This document shows positions 52,202 through 64,000 of a DNA stretch of 64,000 nt, piece after piece (the first letter of the stretch is position 1; every line of letters begins with the position of its first letter). A program made the position numbers and the translations under genes. The notes beneath the pieces were generated by a model. That model was not told where the DNA came from, did not search any database, and was given only the letters and a program-made list of their open reading frames with translations. The stretch is from Macrostomum lignano (lineage: Eukaryota): the NCBI GenBank assembly GCA_002269645.1, contig NIVC01002272.1, positions 1-64,000 on the forward strand, in the 5' to 3' direction.

Positions 52202-52908
52202 GTTTAGAAATCTACGAAGAAGTTAAACTAAGACATAATTTATAGCTACCTACCATTTGAAGCAGCCGTCAAATTGACTCTTCTCTTCTACTCGTCCATG
52301 TTGACAACCCGTTATTGTAGCCAAATATACCCGGTAGATAATAAATAAAAACCATCTGGAAGCTTTCAGATCCTCAAAATACTCTCTGAGTATTATTTTA
52401 GGTATTACTCCTATTAGTATGTCTTTCATTAGGTAAAATTTATTTGTGTCCTACTAATTTTTAAATCAAGGACCACTAGAAGTACATCAATCAGGACGCT
52501 GCAGTCAAAGATGGTATAATTTTTGGAGGCTGATTTCCGTAAAAAAATGCACTGCGGAGATTAGAAAAAATCAACTCTATTTTATATAGTTGTGCAGTGA
52601 AAGTTTTGTTTTTACATTTTTTATAAGCCCGAAGTTGTTAATACTCACAAGTTGAATTACGAGCGTAGTTACATAAAATACACCAGAGCAACATGCTGTT
52701 CATGCTAAATTAAAAGAATGCTAATCTTCACTAATCCAGATCAAATGCAATCATTGATTTTGTAATGAGCCTTCAAAAGAATTACACGATCTTTGACTGT
52801 AGCGTCCTGATTTACTGCTAGTGGTCCTTGATTCAAATCAGAACTTTACCGAAAGCGAACCCATCCAACCTGCTCTCTTTACAGAAGACTTGCATTTTTT
52901 TGAGAAAC

Positions 52909-54177
52909 ATGGACGGTCAAAGCAGCAATGCGACTTCCGCCGGTACAGGACAACTCGAAGCGGCGTCAACTTTGAGTGAACGTCAGCGAGACCAGATCCA
53001 GCATATTAGTCGGTATAGAGATGTGCTTCTTCTAAGACTTGAATCCATGCAGATAAACCAGGCTGGCCAGCCGCTCAGTCTTCGGCATTTAAGCAACGTA
53101 GTTGACTGGCCAGAGTATTACGTTCGAGTCCAGACTGGCTCTAGTAAAGTAGACGAGTTGATTGCAGATTTAGATACGTTTTTCGGCGCCAGTCTGGCTC
53201 AGCTGAATCAGGTGCGCGATGAGGCCAGACAGAAGCTGGCAAGATTTTTTCCGAGCTCAGTGGAAGCGGAGCAGCTTGAGTTGCGCATGTTCCAGCGTCT
53301 AAGATCTTGTCAGGAGGCCAACGAGTCGAATTTCGAAGAAATCTATCAATTTGCAATGGTCGCTCTGTGCTCATTTCTGCACTGGCTGCAGCCGTCGCCT
53401 TGGGAGCGTCGGCAGCAACTTAGCAAACGAATGCACTGGCTTCACGAGCAGTACCAGGACACCATCAAGCAGCGCATTGACGCAGAGTATCGAAGTAATC
53501 CTTTCTACGCTCAGACGCTTCAGAGGTTGTGCCTTGTGTTGAAAGCGCCGGATTCTTTCTTGGAGAAGCGCTCATACTCCGAGGGCATTGTCGGACCGGT
53601 TGATCGTCTGGAAGCGTTTCTGCAAAACTTCTCCAATCAGACGGCTGAGCAGCGCCTTAAAGACCAGCTGATCTGTCGGATGCGGATTTTCCATCGGCAG
53701 CACGGAGATTACATCAGAAAGCGCATGGAAACTAGCAGTATTAGCCCGGTCGTCTTGGACAAGCTTCGTAAAATGCTCGCCGACTTTGAATCACCCGAGT
53801 CATTTTTCCTGCATTATAAAGACGATTTGGAAGCCATGCAAAAATTGCTGGATCGATCCGAGTCCACTCTTGAAGCCGTATTGCCGGACAAATTGCATCC
53901 GAGCTTGCGCAAAGTCCGCACAGAGGCTCGCGCGAAATTGGCGCAATTGTATCGGAGTCCCGCACTTGGTGACTACTATGTAGACCTGCTGCTGAAGCTG
54001 TACCCGAAACCAGAGAAGCTGGAGACTCACCTGTACAACCGGTGTCGAAGGGTTACATCGGACAGTGCCGAGCTGGTTTTATACGAGCGATACATAAAGA
54101 ATCTGCTGATTGTGCTCAACGGTCGCTGGCATGAGAGCCTGTTAAGACCGTTTCTAATCGAAGAACGCGAGCTTTAG
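52909..54177 (+). CDS. Intronless MED15-derived mosaic protein (two KIX-like and about three middle-domain-like modules)
   Basis: ATG 52909 in a 449-codon ORF. VRDEARQKLA and VRTEARAKLAQLYRSPALG...PEKLETHLYNRC resemble the KIX of the 62440 gene. LSERQRDQIQH, RMHWLHEQYQDTIKQRI...LQRLCLVLKAPDSF and RMRIFHRQHGDYIRKRME...LDKLRKMLADFESPESF resemble its middle module. Ends FLIEEREL*. Confidence 0.7.
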   Translation: MDGQSSNATSAGTGQLEAASTLSERQRDQIQHISRYRDVLLLRLESMQINQAGQPLSLRHLSNVVDWPEYYVRVQTGSSKVDELIADLDTFFGASLAQLNQVRDEARQKLARFFPSSVEAEQLELRMFQRLRSCQEANESNFEEIYQFAMVALCSFLHWLQPSPWERRQQLSKRMHWLHEQYQDTIKQRIDAEYRSNPFYAQTLQRLCLVLKAPDSFLEKRSYSEGIVGPVDRLEAFLQNFSNQTAEQRLKDQLICRMRIFHRQHGDYIRKRMETSSISPVVLDKLRKMLADFESPESFFLHYKDDLEAMQKLLDRSESTLEAVLPDKLHPSLRKVRTEARAKLAQLYRSPALGDYYVDLLLKLYPKPEKLETHLYNRCRRVTSDSAELVLYERYIKNLLIVLNGRWHESLLRPFLIEEREL

Positions 54178-54321
54178 TATCGTAGCTACGCTCGTAGTTT
54201 GCGCGACTTTTTGGTGATTGGGTTTCTTAGGCCTAATGGAGAGATGTGCAACAGCTCAGGCGTAGGTTTAGTGCGACGCATCTGAAGGCTGTTTACGGCT
54301 GTTCAGTCAAAGGACCGGGAT

Positions 54322-54494
54322 AGGGGGTCGCCGCACACACCCTCAATTACCTCAGCTAATGCTGCTGGCACCCATTTTACAGCTGGTTGAACAATGCAGA
54401 GTTAAGTGTCATGCTTGTTTCAAGTCGGTCAAGAATCGAACCCCCGACTTTTTAGTCGTGAGTCCGACGTTCTAACCACTAGGCTACAACCCCC
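54322..54494 (-). mobile_element. SINE family A copy
   Basis: Same reverse-complement motifs; a degenerate paralogous copy lies at about 60660-60760. Confidence 0.7.
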
Positions 54495-55230
54495 AATTGA
54501 TAATATATATATAATACCTGAACACTATTCGAATACATGTATATTGAAATCTACTGATCTTGTAGGTCATTGTTATAAAATAAGATTTTATCTTGATTCT
54601 GGGATTTTGATCGTTTTGCACGCCGATAGCTGAACACGTCTGCGAAGTGTTATTTGTGCTCACCACAAAACGTACTCGTTGTCGAAGTCTGCTAAAACTG
54701 GCAATTGAAGTTACGCAAAGAACCCAGCTTCTAATCTGCGGGGTCTATCAGTGTGCATTTCTACTGTAGGTGTAAAACTCTGTTGCCTTTGATTGCTTTT
54801 ATTGCATTCATTTATCTCCTTTATTCGAAACTAAGTACGAAATTTTGACTGGCGCTCAGACTTTATTAATCAGTAAAGCAAAGTTTTTTCAGTTTCCGCA
54901 TTTCAACACTGCCGCTCAAGTTTAACGCTTGTATGCAATTTTGTAGTTTTCAGAAAATACAAAAATGACTAAACTTGTTTGCTCTTATCTTTGATAATTT
55001 TTCTTGTTTTTCTTTAAATTGATTTCAAACCAACATACTAGGATAGAAAAATGGAAGTGCTAGACTGCTCTACATTTCTTAAATAGAAAGATACAGTCAG
55101 TTGATAAAATTATTATTTTAAAACTTCGGAAGCGAACTATACTAACGACGTTTTTAGCTATATGAAAAGACTAAAAAATTGTCATGTAATCCTGGGTCCA
55201 AACCTAGGAATATATAGATCGTATATTCAC

Positions 55231-56171
55231 TACATGGGCCACTATATTTACTACTTGGGCGCGTCAATAGAGTCCTAGGGGTGTTTGGGGTTAGGTCGGG
55301 GTTCGGGGTCCCGATGAATGTTCAGGATGGGGTTCGGGGTTCCCGATAAATGTTCGGGATCGGGGTTCGGGACGGGATTTTGGACCGGGATTTCGGGGTT
55401 TTCGGGGTTCGCAAATTTTCTGAATTCCCATAGAACTACGAAAAAATCCTTATGAATTAGCTTTTTTCGTTTTTAACGTGATCGCTTAAGGCTTATGACG
55501 CTTAAATCCAAAGCTTTATTTAATGCTTTTCTGTGGTCGTAAGTTTCGTTAATAACATTTATAAATACGCGCTCTTTCAAATACTATATTGCAAAACTCG
55601 TACGATCGTACTTAAATAACTTTTGCATAAATATTGCCTTCTACACTGAAATATATTGGCCAAACAGGCTTCTTGCCTGAGCCAAACTTACTACTACTAC
55701 TGTGCACGTGCATATTCTAATACATACTTTACATGACGGACTTAGCTTTTGACACGTGCCGTGCCGTCCATAAACTGCGATGATTATCAAGTCAAAAATA
55801 TTTTTTAAACTTATGGTATAGGATTAGTACTATTACTACTATTATTTTTCTATAATTAAGTTTATATGTTTTTAAGGTATTGTTTCTTAGAAAAAGATTT
55901 AGAATCTTAAGAATTTTAAGAATCATAGAAATGTTTAAATTTATAGACCTATTCTTCAATAGAGAGTCATATCTCTATTAAAAAACAGGTTTATAAAATA
56001 AAATCCCCCAATAATGTCCCCAGGTCCTAGATAGATGATCCGATGAGGTTATCGGGGTCGGGATTAGGGTTCAGGACGGGGTTCGGATTCCCAAAAGATG
56101 TTCGGGATCGGGGTTAACCTGGAACCCCGAAAAAAACGCCGTCCCGAAGACCCGTACAATAGACCCATGTA
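55231..56171. mobile_element. Possible non-autonomous DNA element with GGGGTTCGGG subterminal arrays
   Basis: Ends TACATGGG...CCCATGTA; two G-rich arrays of (GGGGTTCGGG)-like units near both ends. The TIR is very short. Confidence 0.35.
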
Positions 56172-56744
56172 TTTCTTGAAAATTTTAGCGACCACCGTCT
56201 ACTTAGATATAGTTTAAGTTCAGTAGTTTGAGCGATAAGTGCGTACATTATTGTGCTATAATTTTCCGATCCACATGTACTCAGCAACATTGAAAATTCG
56301 CCACTCTATGCAACACCAGTGAGCAATTTCTCTTGGACTGTTGTGAAATAAAAGATACGAGAAAACTAATCGGGGTAGCTTTAATCCGTCCGACAAGTTG
56401 CGTCACTAGCAAAGAATTGAGAGACTTTACCTGCACTCTCAAAAGTTTTCGATTTTTCGTTATTCTTTTACGCCTAAAAACCATTAAAATGGCACGACTC
56501 AGCTCATTGGTTTTATGATTATATTTTATCATATTAGCTGACTGTGTAACAGAGATGATAAAATAGATTCAAAAAACCAAAGGTTCAAGCTGTGCCATGC
56601 ATTTTTAATGACTTTTAGATACAGGAAATGCACGTAAAATCGAAAAACTATTTAGAATCCTAATTTTCTGAGAGAAAGCTTTATAAATATCAATAGAGCT
56701 ATAACAAAGGCACAACATATCAAAATATAAACATTGGGTCTGCC

Positions 56745-58783
56745 CACAGATACTATAAACACTAGATAGGCCACTCCAGCTAATTTTCACAACACGACAG
56801 TTTACTCTACTTTCTGCTTAGTAGTAGTAAAAACATTTTAGCGTTATTTATATTTTTTTAAAATAAAAAAAACAGATGAATGCAATGCAGCAATTGTATT
56901 GATTTTTTGCAAAAAGAAACTTATAATTATACTTTCCACAATTCAAAGCAACATTGTGAATGCTTTAGATTGCATAGAAGGCTATATTATTGCAGTCTAC
57001 TATTGTATATTTAGCAAATACGAGCTATATCATATACTCCATAATCCATATTCGTGTAGCAAAATAGAAAGATTTCTCATCTTAATCAGCTCATCTGTTT
57101 GTGAAACTCGCAGCGTGCTGTCGAAGAACAGGGTCGCCAGTCGCCCTTGTTCAGAGGCAGCATTCAGAACGGCCCAACAGATGAAAAAAACTGGCGAATG
57201 CGCCACTTCAAGGTCCAGGGATGTATCCGATGGAGAGCCAATCCTCAGTGGTTTCGTAACAGGCAGCCGATAAGCAGCAGGACCTTTGTGGTGCAGCTGC
57301 AATGAGCTGCTGATGAGATGACATCCTTTGACCAGAGCACCCCTGACTGCGAGCGCCCTGCCGCCCAGTCGACCGCTGGAAGCTGCGCTAGCCACGCCTC
57401 CACAGTCCATGGATGCACGACTGCGCTGCACTTGCCTTGACCATCGAGAGTGGCCGCTGCAGCCGCTTGATTTGCCTGTCGCTTTCGGGATTGCCGCTGC
57501 AGCCGCTTGATTTGCCTGTCGCTTTCGGGATTGCCGCTGCAGCCGCTTGATTCGCCTGTCGCTTTCGGGATTGCCGCTGCAGCCGCTTGATTCGCCTGTC
57601 ACTTTCGGGATTGCCGCTGCAGCCGCTTGATTCGCCTGTCACTTTCGGGATTGCCGCTTGATTCGCCTGTCACTTTCGGGATCGTTGCTGCAGCCGCTTG
57701 ATCTTTGCCTCTAGCGCTTGGAACCCGCGAATCGGCTGCAGAGGTGAGAGCTTTCAGCCGCAACAGCTGTTCTCGGCGCAGAATCTGGTAGCCGAAGGTT
57801 GCTCTGCCACAGCACTGGCAGCAGGCAAGTCGCAGGCTCGGCTGCAGATAGATTGCTAATTGGCCCCAGCACTGGAGGGTACATGTCGTCTGCCTCTTCA
57901 TCGTTTATCAGTCCTTTGCACAGAGGGTAGCTGGTCTATTTGAACGAGCCGAGGCAGCATCAACTCTTGGTGTGGGATTGCGTCCCAGCGAAAACAGATG
58001 TCTTGCACATCCGTGGCACTTTGTAAGGCAGCAGTAGGCCTCGTCCATAAAGTGCAAGCTGAACACACGGAGGCCCCGTGATTTAATTGTTTATAAAGAT
58101 CAATATCCACGCTCCTGCAGTAGCTGCTGCCAGCGCTTCGCCAGTGTCATCTTTTGGTAATTTATGCATTCGCAACGGATTTTTCTTTCTCGGATGTTAA
58201 TAGCACTAGTACAAAGCTCGTGCAAGTGGGAGCACAGCAGTGGTTCGAATCAAAACATTTCTCGAGTACAAGATTAGATAGAAAAGCTAGTATGCACTCG
58301 AACTTTCTTTAACTCTGACTCTTGTCCTGTTCATCTATATAAGCTTGTATTTAAGCACGATTCGCCACCCCCAAATTTTCTAACCCACAACCTCTCAACC
58401 CCCACCCCACCCCTAACCCAGGCTAGCTATGTGCAGTCCTTTATTTTCTATCCCACCACCAGTAGGCCTAAATTATCGATCCACTCACCCTGCCTTATAC
58501 GAAACTGATATTAACCCTATTCCAGACTACCCCCCTTCCTTCACTTTGAAAGATAGCGGCATTGCACACTGTCTGTCGCGTCTTAATGTACACCAGTACT
58601 GCACAAAACAAGTTAGTTGTTTATGGCGTTAGCAAAACGATGTCTTAAAAACAGTCACTCGATTTGTCTAATTTAGCAAATAATACTGTTGCTTCCTTTC
58701 ATTGCTACTAAGCAGAAAGTAGAATAAAAAACTTGCCCAGAAAATTAGCCTGAGTGGCCTATCTAGTGTTTATAGTATCTGTG
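56745..58783 (-). mobile_element. P-superfamily-like non-autonomous DNA transposon with decayed THAP domain
   Basis: 32-bp perfect TIR CACAGATACTATAAACACTAGATAGGCCACTC with CA...TG termini. 8-bp TSD GGTCTGCC at 56737-56744 and 58784-58791. Minus strand 58245-58049 yields HCCAPTC, HKLPKD, KRWQQ and RVFSLHF across broken frames. Confidence 0.8.
57455..57705 (+). repeat. 40-bp tandem repeat inside the P-like element
   Basis: GCCGCTGCAGCCGCTTGATTTGCCTGTCGCTTTCGGGATT, about 6 copies. Confidence 0.9.
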
Positions 58784-59425
58784 GGTCTGCCTCCTATCGA
58801 AAGCAAAAAAAAATTTGTGTTCAAAAATAAAGACTTCCTTTTTTCGTAGGGTATTTTTCGGTGAACAGTGGCCTTCAAAACGTTTTTAATAGATTTCGAG
58901 TGTTGCGTCCTTCTACTTTAGTATGGTCTACTTAACATGGTTGTTGCAGTCTCACGCAGAAACTGCGCGAGTTCAAACCCAATTGCGTCATTCCAAAGAA
59001 GCCTCTATGTTCCTTTCGCTCCTCGACACTCAAAATATAGATTTTTTGGACTAAACTTGTACACACGAAGCCTTGAATGCCCTAGATATGTGCAAGTTTA
59101 GTCTATAAAAATCTATGAGAATTATTTTGAGTTTCGCTTCCTGATGAGCTAAAGGCTTCCTTAGCTTGCTTTTCAAGTTTTCGTTAATATAAGTCCAATT
59201 TTCGTAACTTTTTTGTCAAACCCTGCTTGCTAGTGTCATTGTGAGCAGAATGACACATCATTTGTGTACATAGGTTACTCGGGCTCCACTTTATGAGCTC
59301 AAGTTGACAGGCCCTTTGGTTAAAGTAGTTCAGAAGCTGGATCCATTTATGCTAATTCATATCGAAAGTTATCAAATTAAGTTTAAAAACCATCTTTCAG
59401 CGCTACCGCGGCTTCAGAGAGTAAA

Positions 59426-60505
59426 ATGGATAACCAAAACCGTGCCCTACGATACGTCATTGTGCCGCCACCGCAGCAGCTGCGTGCTGAGACTCGATGC
59501 AAGCTGGCTAATCTGTACCGCAGCCCTGCACCTGGAAACCAGGTAGCTCAGCTGCTGGACCGCTATCCCACCGCTGAACAACTTGAAGATTCCATTTTCA
59601 GGCATTGTCAGGCTCAGCAGCGGAGTGGTGGCGTCAGCTTTGATCAGCACCAGTACCTGAGCCTTGTGTCCAAGGTGGAAGACGCGCTGACGGGTCGCCT
59701 GTCGCATCAGCGACAGCAGCTGCGTGCTGAGACACGACGCAAATTGGCTAATCTGTACCGCAGCCCCGCACAGGGACACCATGTAACCGAGCTGCTGAAC
59801 CGCTGTCCCACCGCTGAACAGCTAGAAGATTGCCTTTTCAGGTATTGTCATTCTCGCCAACAAAATGGTGGTGTCAGCTTTGATAAGCAGAAGTACCTGC
59901 ACGCTGTGTCCACTATGGAAGGCGTACTGACCGGTCGCCTGCCGCTTAAGCCACAACAGCTGCAGCAGATGCGTGTTGAGACTCGGCGCAAATTTGCTAA
60001 TCTGTACCGCAGCCCTGCACCTGGAAATCTGGTAGCCGATCTGCTGAGACAATATCCTACTGTTGAGCAGCTGGAGGATTTGGCTTTCAGGCGTAGTCAG
60101 GTGCAACAGCAGAGAAGTCGCGCCAGCTTTGATCAGCAGTACCTGAGCATTGTGTCCAAGCTGGAAGACTTACTGACAGGTCGCCTGCCGCCGGCGCAAG
60201 AGCAAAAGCTGGAGCAGATGCTGCAGCAACAGCAGCAGCGGGAGCAGCAGCTGCGTGTTGAGACTCGACGCAAGCTGGCTAATCTGTACCGCAGCCCTAC
60301 ACCTGGAAACCTGGTAGCCCAGCTGCTGAGCCGCTATCCCACCGCTGAACAACTTGAAGATTTCGTTTTCAGGCGTAGTCAGGCGCACCAGCGGAGTGGT
60401 GGCGCCAGCTTTGACCAGCAGTACCTGAGCCTTGTGTCCAACCTGGAAGGCATACTGACGGGTCGCATGCTAAGCCTGCTTCCATTCGATGAACGCGAGA
60501 TTTAA
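59426..60505 (+). CDS. Intronless protein of four tandem MED15-type KIX domains
   Basis: Uninterrupted 359-aa ORF with four roughly 80-aa copies of LRxETRRKLANLYRSPAPG...PTAEQLEDxxFRxxQ...FDQQYLSxVSKxEDxLTGRL; ends LLPFDEREI*. Confidence 0.8.
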   Translation: MDNQNRALRYVIVPPPQQLRAETRCKLANLYRSPAPGNQVAQLLDRYPTAEQLEDSIFRHCQAQQRSGGVSFDQHQYLSLVSKVEDALTGRLSHQRQQLRAETRRKLANLYRSPAQGHHVTELLNRCPTAEQLEDCLFRYCHSRQQNGGVSFDKQKYLHAVSTMEGVLTGRLPLKPQQLQQMRVETRRKFANLYRSPAPGNLVADLLRQYPTVEQLEDLAFRRSQVQQQRSRASFDQQYLSIVSKLEDLLTGRLPPAQEQKLEQMLQQQQQREQQLRVETRRKLANLYRSPTPGNLVAQLLSRYPTAEQLEDFVFRRSQAHQRSGGASFDQQYLSLVSNLEGILTGRMLSLLPFDEREI

Positions 60506-62439
60506 TATCGCATCTAGTTCGTGCCACATGTAACTAATTGTTTGTCCGATATATAAGCATTATTTAGTGTAATAATAAGTAATAATTTACTACAACTGGC
60601 CTAATAGGAAAACCCACTATGGCGTATCGGAAAGCTGCGTACGGCTGTTCGGTCAAAAGACTGGAGTTGCCACACGTTCCAAGTAGGTCGAGAAACGAAC
60701 CCCCCCCCCTTTTAGTCGTGCTCCGATGCTCTAACCACTGGTTTTAATAGAACCCCCAATTTGTTATATATGAAGGACCTGAATATTATTCGAATGCATA
60801 TTTGAATCTAGTGATCTCGTAGGTCATTGTTTTAAAATATGATTTTAGTCGTATTGCACGCTAGTTGCTAAACGCGTCTGCCCAAAGTGTTATGTATGCT
60901 GACCAAAAAATGTACTCGTTGCCGTATTTATCCCTGCCTGCCGAAGCCTGCTGAAACAGGCAATTGAAATTGCGCAAAGAACCCAAAGTAGCTACTATCT
61001 AAAACAGTAGCAACTTGCGCCCATATGCGGTCTATCAATGTGCATTTTTACTAATGGTGTAAAACCCGTTAAGAACGTTACCATGGCAAGAATCGCTAAA
61101 GAGTCATTGTAAACAACTCTCTAGTGAGTCTAGCGACTCTGGTGCAACTATTATGACTTTTTAACGACTCATGCGACGGAGAGGCGACTGTTGCGTCACA
61201 AGCGCGTCACGTGAGTTGCAGAATCGTGAAACAGTCGTTCTATTGTATTCATTTATCTGCTTTTATTAAGTACGAAACTGGCTGGCGCTCCGAATTTTTA
61301 AATCAGTGACGCAAAACTGTCGCAGTCGGTAGTTTTTTTCAGTTTGCGCATTTCAACAATTAACTACTGCTCAAGTTTAACAACTTTTGTATGCAATTTT
61401 GCCGTTTTATCCAGAAAGTAGATACGAAAAGGACTGAATTTGTTTGTTCCATCTTTGGTAATTTTATTGGTCTTTTCTTAATTTATTTCAAACCAACAGG
61501 AAAACACTACGAGACTGACTTGAAGCCAAAAGCTACGTTATAATTCTCGACTCTTATTTTCGTTACCTCTTATACTTTTACGTTGACCATACACAATATT
61601 TCTATGGCTAACTGTGCCAGAATCATTTGAAGCGTGCATTCTTCACTTTGGTTGGTAAAGTTGACTTTTAGCGACACAAATGGACACCTAATGCCAAACG
61701 AGCGTAAATCAAGAACAGCTGGCAACAGACCTCGGCAATCACACTAAGAGAGCCAACCAGCTAGGGTTCCTCACTGCCGCAAAATCTATAGGCAGTAGCA
61801 CAAACACGTGCTGGACTATTGACACCCCTGTACTGACTCACTGGGGCGGAGCGGGGGTAGTGTGGAAAGGCGCGGTTGGAGGATTTCAGCTGCGGGGTAA
61901 GAGCCAACAAATGAGCCTTGGTTTTAAAAATGCAATAAAATGCTTCTGTTTAACTTACTACTGAACTGAAAGTAGCTTACACGCAAATGTGCTGAGTGGC
62001 TCATCTAGTTATTCTAGTATCTGGGTTTTTTGTCAGTTGAATGCACGCTTTATTTGATTCTGGCACAATTATTGCCGGATGGTTAATGTTTTGTCTATGG
62101 GCTTGCCAATGTCCAACAAGCATCATAGCTGAGACGCTGACATTCCAGCGTTACTCCACAGCCCACAGATGGTTGCGAGTAGGCAAGAGCTGTCAGCCTT
62201 GCTACATTAAGCAAACGTATCTCGGATTAAATTCAAGGCGCTTAAGCACAAATAGGCTGCAAAAAGCTATATTAAATACTTAATTATTTATAGGGTATAA
62301 AATACTTTTGTAAACCTAATTTGTAGTGTTCCGTAAACTCAATCTCATTTCATATAAATTCATACCGTAAGCTGTAAAATAAAGTTTTGAAAAATGAAAT
62401 CACCATCGTTATCTTTCAGAGCTACCGGCTTCAGAAAAA

Positions 62440-63666
62440 ATGGAGCCGAACCAAAACTATGGCCAACGATACCCCATCATGCAGCAACAACAGCTGCAGC
62501 AGCTGCGTGTTGAGACTCGACGCAAGCTGGCTAATCTGTACCGCAGCCCTGCACCTGGAAACCAGGTAGCCCAGCTGCTAAACCGTTATCCCACCGCTGA
62601 TCAACTGGAGGATCACGTTTTCAGGCGTTGTCAGGCTCACCAGCAAGGTGGTGGCGTCAGCTTTGACCAGCAGTACCTGAGCATTGTGTCCAAGCTGGAG
62701 GACGCACTGACAGGTCGCCTGCCGCAGCCGCAACAGCCGCAGCAGATGATGCAGCAGCAGCAGCCGCCGCCTACTCAAGTGATGCAACAGCAATTGCAGC
62801 AGCAGCAGCAGCAGATGATGCAACAGCAGCCTCCGCCGCAACCTCAGCCTCAGGTGATTCGGCCTCAAATGCCGACAGATCCGCTGGTGTCGCTTTCAAA
62901 CATGGTCGGCGGCGGCCCGGTTGGCGTCAGCAACATCGTTGTCGGTGGTGCCCGGATGGGGCAGCAGAGTGTGCCGTTGCAGCCTCGCATGGGGACCAGG
63001 CCTGTTCCGCAGCAGCAGCAGCAGCCGCCTCCCAACCAGCTTCCACCATTGAATGAGCGTCAGCAGGTTCAAGTGCAGCGCATGCGGCAGCTCCACCAGC
63101 AGCACAGCGAGACGGTCAGAGCCCGGATGGAAAATTCGCACGGCAATGCGGCCAATTTTGAGAAGCTGCGCCAGATTTGCAACATTCTCGAGACGCCAGA
63201 AAATTTTGTACGCAACCAGCGGGATCCGGATAAAATTGACAACACAATCAGGCAGTTGGAGAGCATTCTGCGGCCCAATGCGCCTCACGCTCAGGCACTG
63301 CAGCAGCAGCAGCAGCAGCAGCACATGCTACAACAACAGAGACTTCAGCAGCAGCAGCAGCAGCAAATGCAACAGCAGCAACTGCAGCACCAGCAGCTAC
63401 AGCAGCAGCAACAACTCCAGCAACAGCAGCAGCAGCAACTGCAACAACAGCAATTGCAGCAGCAGCAATTGCAACAACTGCAGCAGCAACAGCAATTTCA
63501 GCAGCAGAAATTGCAACAGCAGCAGATGATGTCGCAGATGCAGCAACAACAACAGCAGCAGCAGCAATCGCCAATGCCCATGTCCAGTGCAGCTCCTGAC
63601 AGCGTCGCTGCTTCGTCGCATGACATTCCTCCGGCGCCTCGTCGACTTGGTGAAACACTTCTTAAA
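62440..63666 (+). CDS. MED15: Mediator subunit 15-like (KIX, polyQ, middle helical domain, polyQ); probably continues beyond the window
   Basis: TRRKLA...ADQLEDHVFRR...QQYLSIVSKL aligns by eye with the recalled MED15 KIX (FRQKLV...SKDMESHVFLK...DEYLSLVARL). TDPLVSLSNMVGG resembles SDPMNALQSLTGG. FEKLRQICNILETP resembles LSKMKSLLDILTDP. Long polyQ tracts; plausible donor AAA/GTACGT at 63667. Confidence 0.72.
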
Positions 63667-64000
63667 GTACGTTAAAGTACGCCAACCAATCACCTCTTAG
63701 TTGACTCTATAAATTCGCTGTCAAGGTTCACCTTTAATACAAAAGAGTTCGGCCTCCAATACCTTTTTTTAGAGCAAAACATCATCAACTTGGTGTTTTT
63801 AAAGCCGTTCCCTATCTGTCCGTTGCCCAACGATTCAAAATCACTAACAAGTTTTCTCCAGCCAACGATTGAAAGAAGCAACCAGAATCCATGGAACATT
63901 CTGTCACGATAGATTGCATCCGCCGTCAGTTGCGTCCCCACCGGAGTGGAGAGGGGGGCATGTCCCCCGGCCCCAGTAAAAGCTGTGGGGGGGGGGACAT

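Follow-up and report, generated by a model that had tools for sequence, protein, structure and literature searches.

A stretch of 64,000 nucleotides (nt) from the flatworm Macrostomum lignano (contig NIVC01002272.1, positions 1 to 64,000; hereafter C2272, the whole stretch being the window) raises the question of whether an animal can carry shortened, free-standing relatives of MED15, the tail subunit by which many activators reach Mediator. Three open reading frames (ORF1, ORF2 and ORF3) lie within 11 kb of this contig, all on the plus strand, and a preliminary description proposed that ORF3 is a MED15 with polyglutamine (polyQ) tracts and that the two upstream frames are truncated, module-amplified paralogs of it, possibly free activator-binding proteins. 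We analysed the locus computationally and recovered the coordinates and lengths of all three frames as well as their common strand. The reading towards which we cautiously lean is a single, very divergent MED15 gene accompanied by two paralogs made of its N and M modules, devoid of a Mediator anchor and acting as separate free proteins.

The family relationship rests on two modules. The N module, of about 80 amino acids (aa), was found once in ORF3, four times in ORF2 and twice in ORF1, and the M module, with the signature RMRxxHxQH...KLR...ILETPENF, once in ORF3 and three times in ORF1. The four N copies of ORF2 are 66-78% identical to the N module of ORF3, and those of ORF1 are 32-36% identical to it. 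The modules of ORF1 were aligned locally to the ORF3 modules and compared with shuffled sequences, and both kinds scored far beyond chance (Table 1). Moreover, the alignment showed that hydrophobic-core positions are kept across all seven N modules of the three frames, and ORF2 and ORF3 have a homologous 5′ leader and the same first codons. The modules described earlier as common to all three frames (N) and to the first and third (M) are therefore real, while ORF1 turned out to hold more copies of them than had been listed. ORF1 and ORF2 are made up of N and M modules and a terminal tail of 12-14 aa, with nothing else, and the polyQ-rich linkers are missing from them, as had been stated, the single Q-rich linker of ORF2 being the only one. 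Taken together, the alignments identify ORF2 and ORF1 as paralogous to the N-terminal half of the gene to which ORF3 belongs, ORF1 being the old and diverged one.

The resemblance between the tails of ORF1 and ORF2 is not significant when taken alone (p ~0.07). A reading of their ends (...EREL and ...EREI) as endoplasmic reticulum retention signals was rejected on inspection, as the residues depart from the general retention pattern [KRHQSA]-[DENQ]-E-L and no signal-peptide-like hydrophobic N-terminus was seen.

A search of the 764 Mb genome confined the N/M module family to this locus and two near-identical copies of it, on contigs C1542 (~99-100% identity) and C1545 (~96-98%). Three copies are consistent with the published neopolyploidy of the species (PMC10733133). 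Since a 2,037-bp mobile element is present in C2272 only, C2272 and C1542 are distinct copies and not an assembly duplicate. ORF1 is intact in each of the three copies, ORF2 in that of C2272 alone.

ORF3 had been taken for an intronless and complete gene. Instead, it proved to be exon 1 of a two-exon gene: a phase-0 splice donor stands at position 63666 (AAA followed by GTACGT), and the acceptor lies 834 nt further on (ctcctccag, followed by GAAATC). Donor and acceptor are kept in all three genomic copies, with introns of 834, 710 and 857 nt, and these lengths differ because of a 25-bp tandem array inside the intron. The spliced product has 666 aa and consists of the N module, a polyQ/P stretch, the M module, a long polyQ stretch and a non-repetitive C-terminal region, and the C domain encoded by exon 2 bears two acidic/serine-rich insertions. 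As a side observation, the intron array (C2272:64105-64344) contains 9.7 copies of the unit CTGCGGCGCCAAAATGAGTGCCTGT with 93% matches, and a 21-bp array adjoins it.

We then asked how far this product resembles MED15. Its parts are co-linear with those of MED15, in the order N, polyQ, M, Q-rich region, MED27/29 helices and C domain, and the polyQ stands where MED15 has polyQ. The N module aligned with mammalian MED15 (P0108) at KIX alpha2-alpha3 (LEDHVFRRCQ...QQYLSIVSKL against MESHVFLKAK..DEYLSLVARL), and 3 of 2000 shuffles did as well. The M module aligned with the same protein at KMKSLLDILTDP against KLRQICNILETP, around a 'K.K..L.IL..P' motif (p ~0.04). When N, M and C were chained in a gap-tolerant alignment, the score exceeded 1000 of 1000 shuffles in three gap regimes and stood at 8/1000 with the standard -11/-1 penalties; across the four regimes z was 3.8-5.3 and the Gumbel p ~0.7-4e-3. 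The C domain within this chain gave 7-11/1000 shuffles, which is suggestive only. The chain ran in canonical order through 'LL..SPV..F', then 'L..E.A.L.P', 'P.L....YP' and 'S.T..L'. Against a worm MDT-15 sequence, used as a lead only, N and M each reached p = 0.007 and C was not significant. No other MED15 candidate was found in the 764 Mb genome by searches with the Pfam Med15_N, Med15_M and Med15_C families and with the M and C parts of human MED15. MED15 is markedly divergent even inside a subphylum, and extremely so between lineages (PMC2475620). Further, the copies of the gene differ by 17 synonymous and 3 non-synonymous changes (p = 7e-9); against C1545, the ratio of non-synonymous to synonymous substitution rates (dN/dS, or omega) was 0.07 for exon 1, and in exon 2 the two kinds of difference numbered 6 and 0, respectively. 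Purifying selection on the gene is strong. A divergent MED15 orthologue is the most likely identity of the ORF3 gene, and we regard it as probable.

The part of MED15 that holds it in Mediator is known for the mouse protein, where residues 620-652 form two helices interdigitating with MED27/MED29, residues 654-674 form a loop along MED14, and residues 678-787 form a fold between MED23 and MED24 (PMC7921410). In our alignment these residues correspond to the stretch at the junction of exons 1 and 2 ('LL..SPV..F') and to exon 2. In ORF1 and ORF2, no part aligned to exon 2 or to the helices at the junction. The upstream paralogs thus have no segment matching the mouse anchor region, in agreement with the preliminary description, provided that the MED15 mapping is right.

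The next point is whether the three frames would be expressed separately. In this species the trans-splice acceptor motif for the spliced leader (SL) is [T/C]TNCAG, and the leader itself ends in ...TTGCATG (PMC8629364). Such a motif precedes each of the three start codons closely (Table 1), the background chance of finding one within 40 nt being ~0.11. Gene model P0123 (ORF1) begins at the first base after the AG of its motif, and gene model P0126 (ORF2) at the first in-frame codon after the AG of its own; neither starts at a start codon or at an upstream stop. Judged by these starts, the two models look like transcript-based 5′-partial coding sequences. A deposited protein of 196 aa in nr/UniRef (P0125) spans modules 3-4 of the C1545 copy of ORF2. 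The spacers measure 5.2 kb between ORF1 and ORF2 and 1.9 kb between ORF2 and ORF3. From their sequence context, ORF1, ORF2 and the ORF3 gene look like separate mRNAs. The preliminary description had allowed that the paralogs might be exons of one long MED15 mRNA; this is not obviously so, in view of their own stops, their own SL-type acceptors and the two gene models there.

Some side observations concern the ends of these transcripts. The ATG of the spliced leader, if joined after TTACAG (at 52885), is predicted to be in frame with ORF1 (M-KTCIFLRN-MDGQ...). At the ORF2 acceptor it is predicted to open an upstream frame of 8 codons that ends directly before the ORF2 ATG, and at the ORF3 acceptor an overlapping, out-of-frame ORF of ~60 codons. 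Downstream of the stops of ORF1 and ORF2 lies a homologous segment of ~165 nt (window ~54416-54577 and 60675-60834, respectively), which holds a reverse-complemented, tRNA-like T-arm (GGTTCGATTC), although ARAGORN called no tRNA gene there. We rejected a shared 3′ untranslated region as the explanation for this segment: with a T-arm and no ARAGORN tRNA gene, it is probably a fragment of a tRNA-derived short interspersed nuclear element.

The two paralogs differ in how well they have been preserved. ORF1 had 8 synonymous and 9 non-synonymous differences from C1545, a dN/dS of 0.32 (binomial p = 0.02), and DNA shuffled at the composition of ORF1 stayed open over 422 codons in 0 of 20000 trials. 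ORF1 is under purifying selection, more weakly than MED15. Between N modules, that is, the ORF2 repeats together with the MED15 N module, the synonymous divergence (dS) ranged over 0.07-0.39; omega was 0.4-0.8 except for one pair at 1.7, and simulated neutral drift left ORF2 without a stop with a probability of 0.015-0.11, indels being ignored. ORF2 evolves in a relaxed manner and has copy-specific frameshifts. The dN/dS check suggested in the preliminary description therefore came out well below 1 for ORF1 and ambiguously for ORF2, whose modules range up to the pair at 1.7 and which is frameshifted in two of the three copies. ORF1 is the better candidate for a maintained function, and ORF2 may be drifting towards loss among the redundant copies of a polyploid genome.

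A partial duplication of the 5′ half of the probable MED15 gene gave rise to the two lineage-specific paralogs upstream of it on the same strand. Internal amplification of the modules followed, leaving ORF2 as a leader, a start and four N modules and ORF1 as the series M-N-M-M-N. The proteins would be made from separate trans-spliced mRNAs. Because they have several N and M modules and no tail anchor, the paralogs could bind the partners of the N-terminal half of MED15 without being able to deliver them to Mediator. If the modules are an activator-binding surface, as in the MED15 of other animals, the paralogs might serve as competitors or buffers, in a dominant-negative-like manner, or as multivalent adaptors. 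A decoy or sponge function is a plausible hypothesis. The most far-reaching version, a flatworm in which free, multivalent, anchorless MED15 proteins titrate or scaffold activation domains and so tune Mediator recruitment, we think improbable.

A considerable body of results weighs against a MED15 gene with functional paralogs, and most of it concerns the family label. A Pfam hmmscan of all ORFs, of the spliced product and of the isolated modules returned nothing relevant, even at E <= 10, and Med15_N (PF09606), Med15_M (PF21538), Med15_C (PF21539), KIX and KIX_2 had no match to the locus. The M and C parts of human or mammalian MED15, used as a genome-wide query, did not retrieve the locus or anything else real. 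A phmmer search of PDB sequences with the ORFs and exon 2 found nothing, and a hidden Markov model (HMM) of the seven N modules hit no MED15 or KIX chain among PDB sequences. Among 1.84 billion representative proteins, the same HMM retrieved only the products of the locus itself and one spurious protein. With hhalign, the N module matched the mammalian MED15 KIX with a probability of 0.7%, and CBP KIX did not align to any of the seven N modules above shuffles. The C-terminal domain, taken by itself, showed no significant similarity to MED15 of mammals or of the worm. Neither the word-indexed searches with the C-terminal region and ORF2 nor the HMM search of the 1.84 billion proteins brought up a homologue from another genome, and the spliced ORF3-gene models and ORF variants had no exact match on record in the protein collection. 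AlphaFold gave a confident N-module model (predicted local distance difference test score, pLDDT, 87.5; predicted template modelling score, pTM, 0.72) with four helices at 2-19, 25-33, 37-53 and 59-75, for which Foldseek retrieved no KIX structure from the PDB; the best hit (E 0.68) was the Rx coiled-coil domain, an unrelated helical bundle. This outcome is negative for a KIX-like fold in the model yet not decisive, small helical bundles being hard for Foldseek. The preliminary description named a failure of the modules to match the MED15 KIX in profile searches as what would refute its reading; with profile and structure searches negative, the KIX claim is not supported by that standard. The MED15/KIX label as a whole is weakly supported, and no family-level test demonstrates membership in MED15.

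The remaining points on that side concern ORF2. Its C1542 copy is frameshifted by the deletion of 1 bp from a run of CCC, and its C1545 copy by a 22-bp deletion with GTGC microhomology; moreover, the SL acceptor of the C1542 copy is mutated, and the omega values between modules would also fit a nearly neutral evolution of the ORF2 branch. The assembly is based on PacBio reads (PMC5730564), and the 1-bp deletion, lying in a homopolymer, may be an assembly error. The 22-bp deletion is unlikely to be one and is probably real. A frameshift in two of three copies weakens the case for ORF2 as a functional paralog.

A few observations from these searches stand apart. The word-indexed searches with the C-terminal region and ORF2 matched only a copy from the same genome, and the homologue search with human MED15 returned mammals only, which precluded a diverse profile. 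Structure prediction covered the N module and the whole of ORF2; the latter, predicted without an alignment, was modelled poorly (pTM 0.30), and a Foldseek search with that model was uninformative. The genome-wide Med15_N/M/C searches yielded no real match, the best sub-threshold frames being stop-containing or low-complexity, and the sub-threshold matches on C195, C4721 and C283 were discarded as a second MED15 because their frames are short, stop-containing or low-complexity. We likewise discarded the one foreign protein from the 1.84-billion-protein search, a TLDc-repeat protein that matches 'LYRS..G..LL' alone. The ORF2 copy on C1542 (P0002) carries a precomputed Pfam accession, PF26249.1.

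How should these results be read? The negative profile, profile-profile and structure searches could mean that the ORF3 gene and its paralogs are a lineage-specific, Q-rich helical family which resembles MED15 by chance, the true MED15 being absent from the assembly or undetectably divergent. The C domain, not significant alone, fits this too, and so does a chain-test p of only ~1e-3 for a hypothesis that was picked after inspection of the sequence. We nevertheless consider a chance resemblance unlikely. It would have to produce motifs of N, of M, of the MED27/29 helices and of three segments of the C domain in canonical order with polyQ placed as in MED15, together with weak but concordant signals of N and M against two distant MED15 references (one of them used as a lead only); no alternative MED15 locus exists in the 764 Mb, MED15 is notoriously divergent (PMC2475620), and the purifying selection is as strong as expected for an essential single-copy gene. 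More weight, although still doubtful in our judgement, goes to the idea that ORF2, and possibly ORF1, are non-functional partial duplicates that a neopolyploid genome rich in repeats would tolerate, with no transcription beyond noise, and that are turning into pseudogenes. The frameshifts in two of three ORF2 copies, one of them the microhomology deletion, point this way, as do the mutated acceptor in C1542, the between-module omega of 0.4-0.8 with one pair above 1, the lack of homologues among the 1.84 billion proteins and a young mobile element between ORF1 and ORF2. Decay of this kind sits badly with ORF1, which has diverged by ~65% from the N module and yet keeps 422 codons open in 3/3 copies with an omega of 0.32. 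Even ORF2 has stayed stop-free over a dS of ~0.2-0.4 with a drift probability of 0.015-0.11 before indels are counted; the core positions are kept in the seven N modules, the module has a confident AlphaFold fold, and one of the two frameshifts is the deletion that may be an assembly error.

The remaining alternative is one transcription unit, in which the modules of ORF1 and ORF2, as alternative 5′ exons or as cistrons further upstream, would be spliced onto MED15, giving isoforms with extra N and M modules. The three frames share a strand and fit within 11 kb, the reading frame 5′ of the ORF3 start codon stays open across the acceptor, and ~7% of the assembled transcripts of this species are multi-gene precursors (PMC5730564). 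We judge exon sharing very improbable all the same: ORF1 and ORF2 each end in a stop directly after a similar C-terminal tail, the separate gene models P0123 and P0126 start at acceptors, and the spacers are long (5.2 kb and 1.9 kb), one of them with a mobile element inside. A polycistronic precursor resolved by the spliced leader would still give separate proteins and is compatible with a MED15 gene flanked by free paralogs.

Compared with metazoan MED15 (ARC105 / MDT-15), the ORF3 gene has the same order of parts, namely a small N-terminal helical domain, polyQ, a helical middle region, a second Q-rich region, the 'LL...SPV...F' helices and a C-terminal domain; it shares the motifs K.(K/R)..(L/I).(D/N)IL..P, 'P.L.(L/I)..(P/A)..YP' and 'S(V/L)T..L(N/D)', and it is a single locus in its genome under strong purifying selection. 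It departs from metazoan MED15 in falling under every Pfam, PDB, hhalign and Foldseek threshold, in an N domain that is predicted as four-helical, containing an additional short helix and a break at SPAPG, and in the two acidic/serine-rich insertions of its C domain. In a comparative survey, Mediator paralogs in animals were recorded for Med1, Med12, Med13, Cdk8 and Med30 and none for MED15, 14 Med2 paralogs were predicted in Candida albicans, and plants and oomycetes have three to five MED15 paralogs (PMC2475620).

The TLO (Med2) genes of C. albicans are likewise a lineage-specific amplification of an activator-facing Mediator tail subunit, whose extra copies could alter the coupling between activators and Mediator. 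In Tlo proteins the Med2 domain, by which they enter Mediator, is retained; the paralogs of the flatworm, in contrast, have no anchoring part, are amplified by internal repeats and not at full length, number only two, and lie in tandem beside their parent. Duplicated MED15 genes are also represented by the plant and oomycete paralogs and by Gal11A/B of Candida glabrata, but these are full-length and thought to form alternative tail triads, whereas the flatworm duplicates are cut to N and M modules and occur in an animal. In the plant proteins KIX8 and KIX9 a KIX domain can be recognised, along with an EAR motif for the recruitment of TOPLESS. They too are small proteins, essentially an activator-binding domain of coactivator type acting apart from the coactivator; however, the searches did not establish the flatworm N module as a KIX domain, nor was a repression motif found. 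What is distinctive here is that the duplicates are truncated to the N-terminal modules, that these modules are internally amplified, and that the host is an animal.

If the far-reaching version with free, anchorless MED15 proteins is true, it would be the first case in an animal of a natural coactivator-decoy family that stems from a Mediator subunit. Should the paralogs be expressed as proteins, they would offer a natural separation of function, with activator-facing domains freed from the anchor, and a handle on coactivator dosage and competition in a flatworm amenable to transgenesis and RNA interference. Neither Pfam nor a structure search detects the probable MED15 of this species, and automated annotation would therefore miss it. 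If instead ORF2 is decaying and the MED15 label is wrong, the locus would be a lineage-specific family of tandem helical repeats, ordinary in a repeat-rich polyploid genome.

Table 1. Features of the locus on C2272 (window coordinates unless marked otherwise)
Feature	Position	Strand	Remarks
SL-acceptor motif TTACAG	52879..52884	+	24 nt 5′ of ORF1 ATG
ORF1	52909..54177	+	422 aa; M-N-M-M-N and short C-terminal tail; no polyQ, no anchor region
ORF1 M module 1 (aa 22-90)	52972..53178	+	score 86 against ORF3 M, 0/1000 shuffles, p = 7e-9
ORF1 N module 1 (aa 98-164)	53200..53400	+	score 67, p = 6e-7; lacks short second helix
ORF1 M module 2 (aa 166-239)	53404..53625	+	score 100, p = 4e-10
ORF1 M module 3 (aa 257-330)	53677..53898	+	score 97, p = 1.5e-10
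ORF1 N module 2 (aa 333-410)	53905..54138	+	score 113, p = 1e-12; followed by tail ...ESLLRPFLIEEREL and stop
Mobile element	56745..58781		2,037 bp; between ORF1 and ORF2, C2272 only
SL-acceptor motif TTTCAG	59395..59400	+	25 nt 5′ of ORF2 ATG; leader homologous to ORF3 leader
ORF2	59426..60505	+	359 aa; start resembling that of MED15, N module four times in tandem, tail MLSLLPFDEREI and stop
ORF2 N modules 1-4	59474-59704, 59708-59947, 59954-60196, 60236-60469	+	
ORF2 Q-rich linker	60200-60250	+	17 aa, single
SL-acceptor motif TTTCAG	62414..62419	+	20 nt 5′ of ORF3 ATG
ORF3 open frame	62440-63675	+	411 aa
Exon 1, probable MED15 gene	62440..63666	+	409 codons
ORF3 N module	62488-62733	+	
ORF3 polyQ/P	62725-62856	+	
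ORF3 M module	63043-63297	+	
ORF3 second polyQ	63298-63570	+	
Start of 'LL..SPV..F' anchor helices	63640-63666	+	
Intron (start)	63667..64000	+	834-nt intron, GTACGT donor, runs to contig 64500
Exon 2	contig 64501-65274, beyond window	+	257 aa, C-terminal domain

The surroundings of the three frames provided some further observations. The 2,037-bp element is missing at the corresponding site in C1542 and C1545, and elsewhere in the genome it has at least 25 full-length copies with 96-99% identity as well as many partial ones (positions 1-966 and 709-2037). It is a young, recently active and probably non-autonomous mobile element and does not belong to the gene family. Two minus-strand ORFs, at 57030-57638 and 57599-57901, fall within it.

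The divergence between C1542 and C2272 is uneven, with 0-2 differences over ORF1, ORF2 and exon 1, 9 in exon 2 (C1542:28143-28916) and ~5% divergence directly downstream of exon 2. Such a mosaic is suggestive of recombination between the copies, or of gene conversion. Further downstream on C2272, a 381-aa open frame at 67575-68720 has the look of ankyrin repeats, by eye only, and a 550-aa open frame lies at 70115-71767. Both of these neighbours are on the minus strand, and the same-strand cluster therefore ends with the probable MED15 gene.

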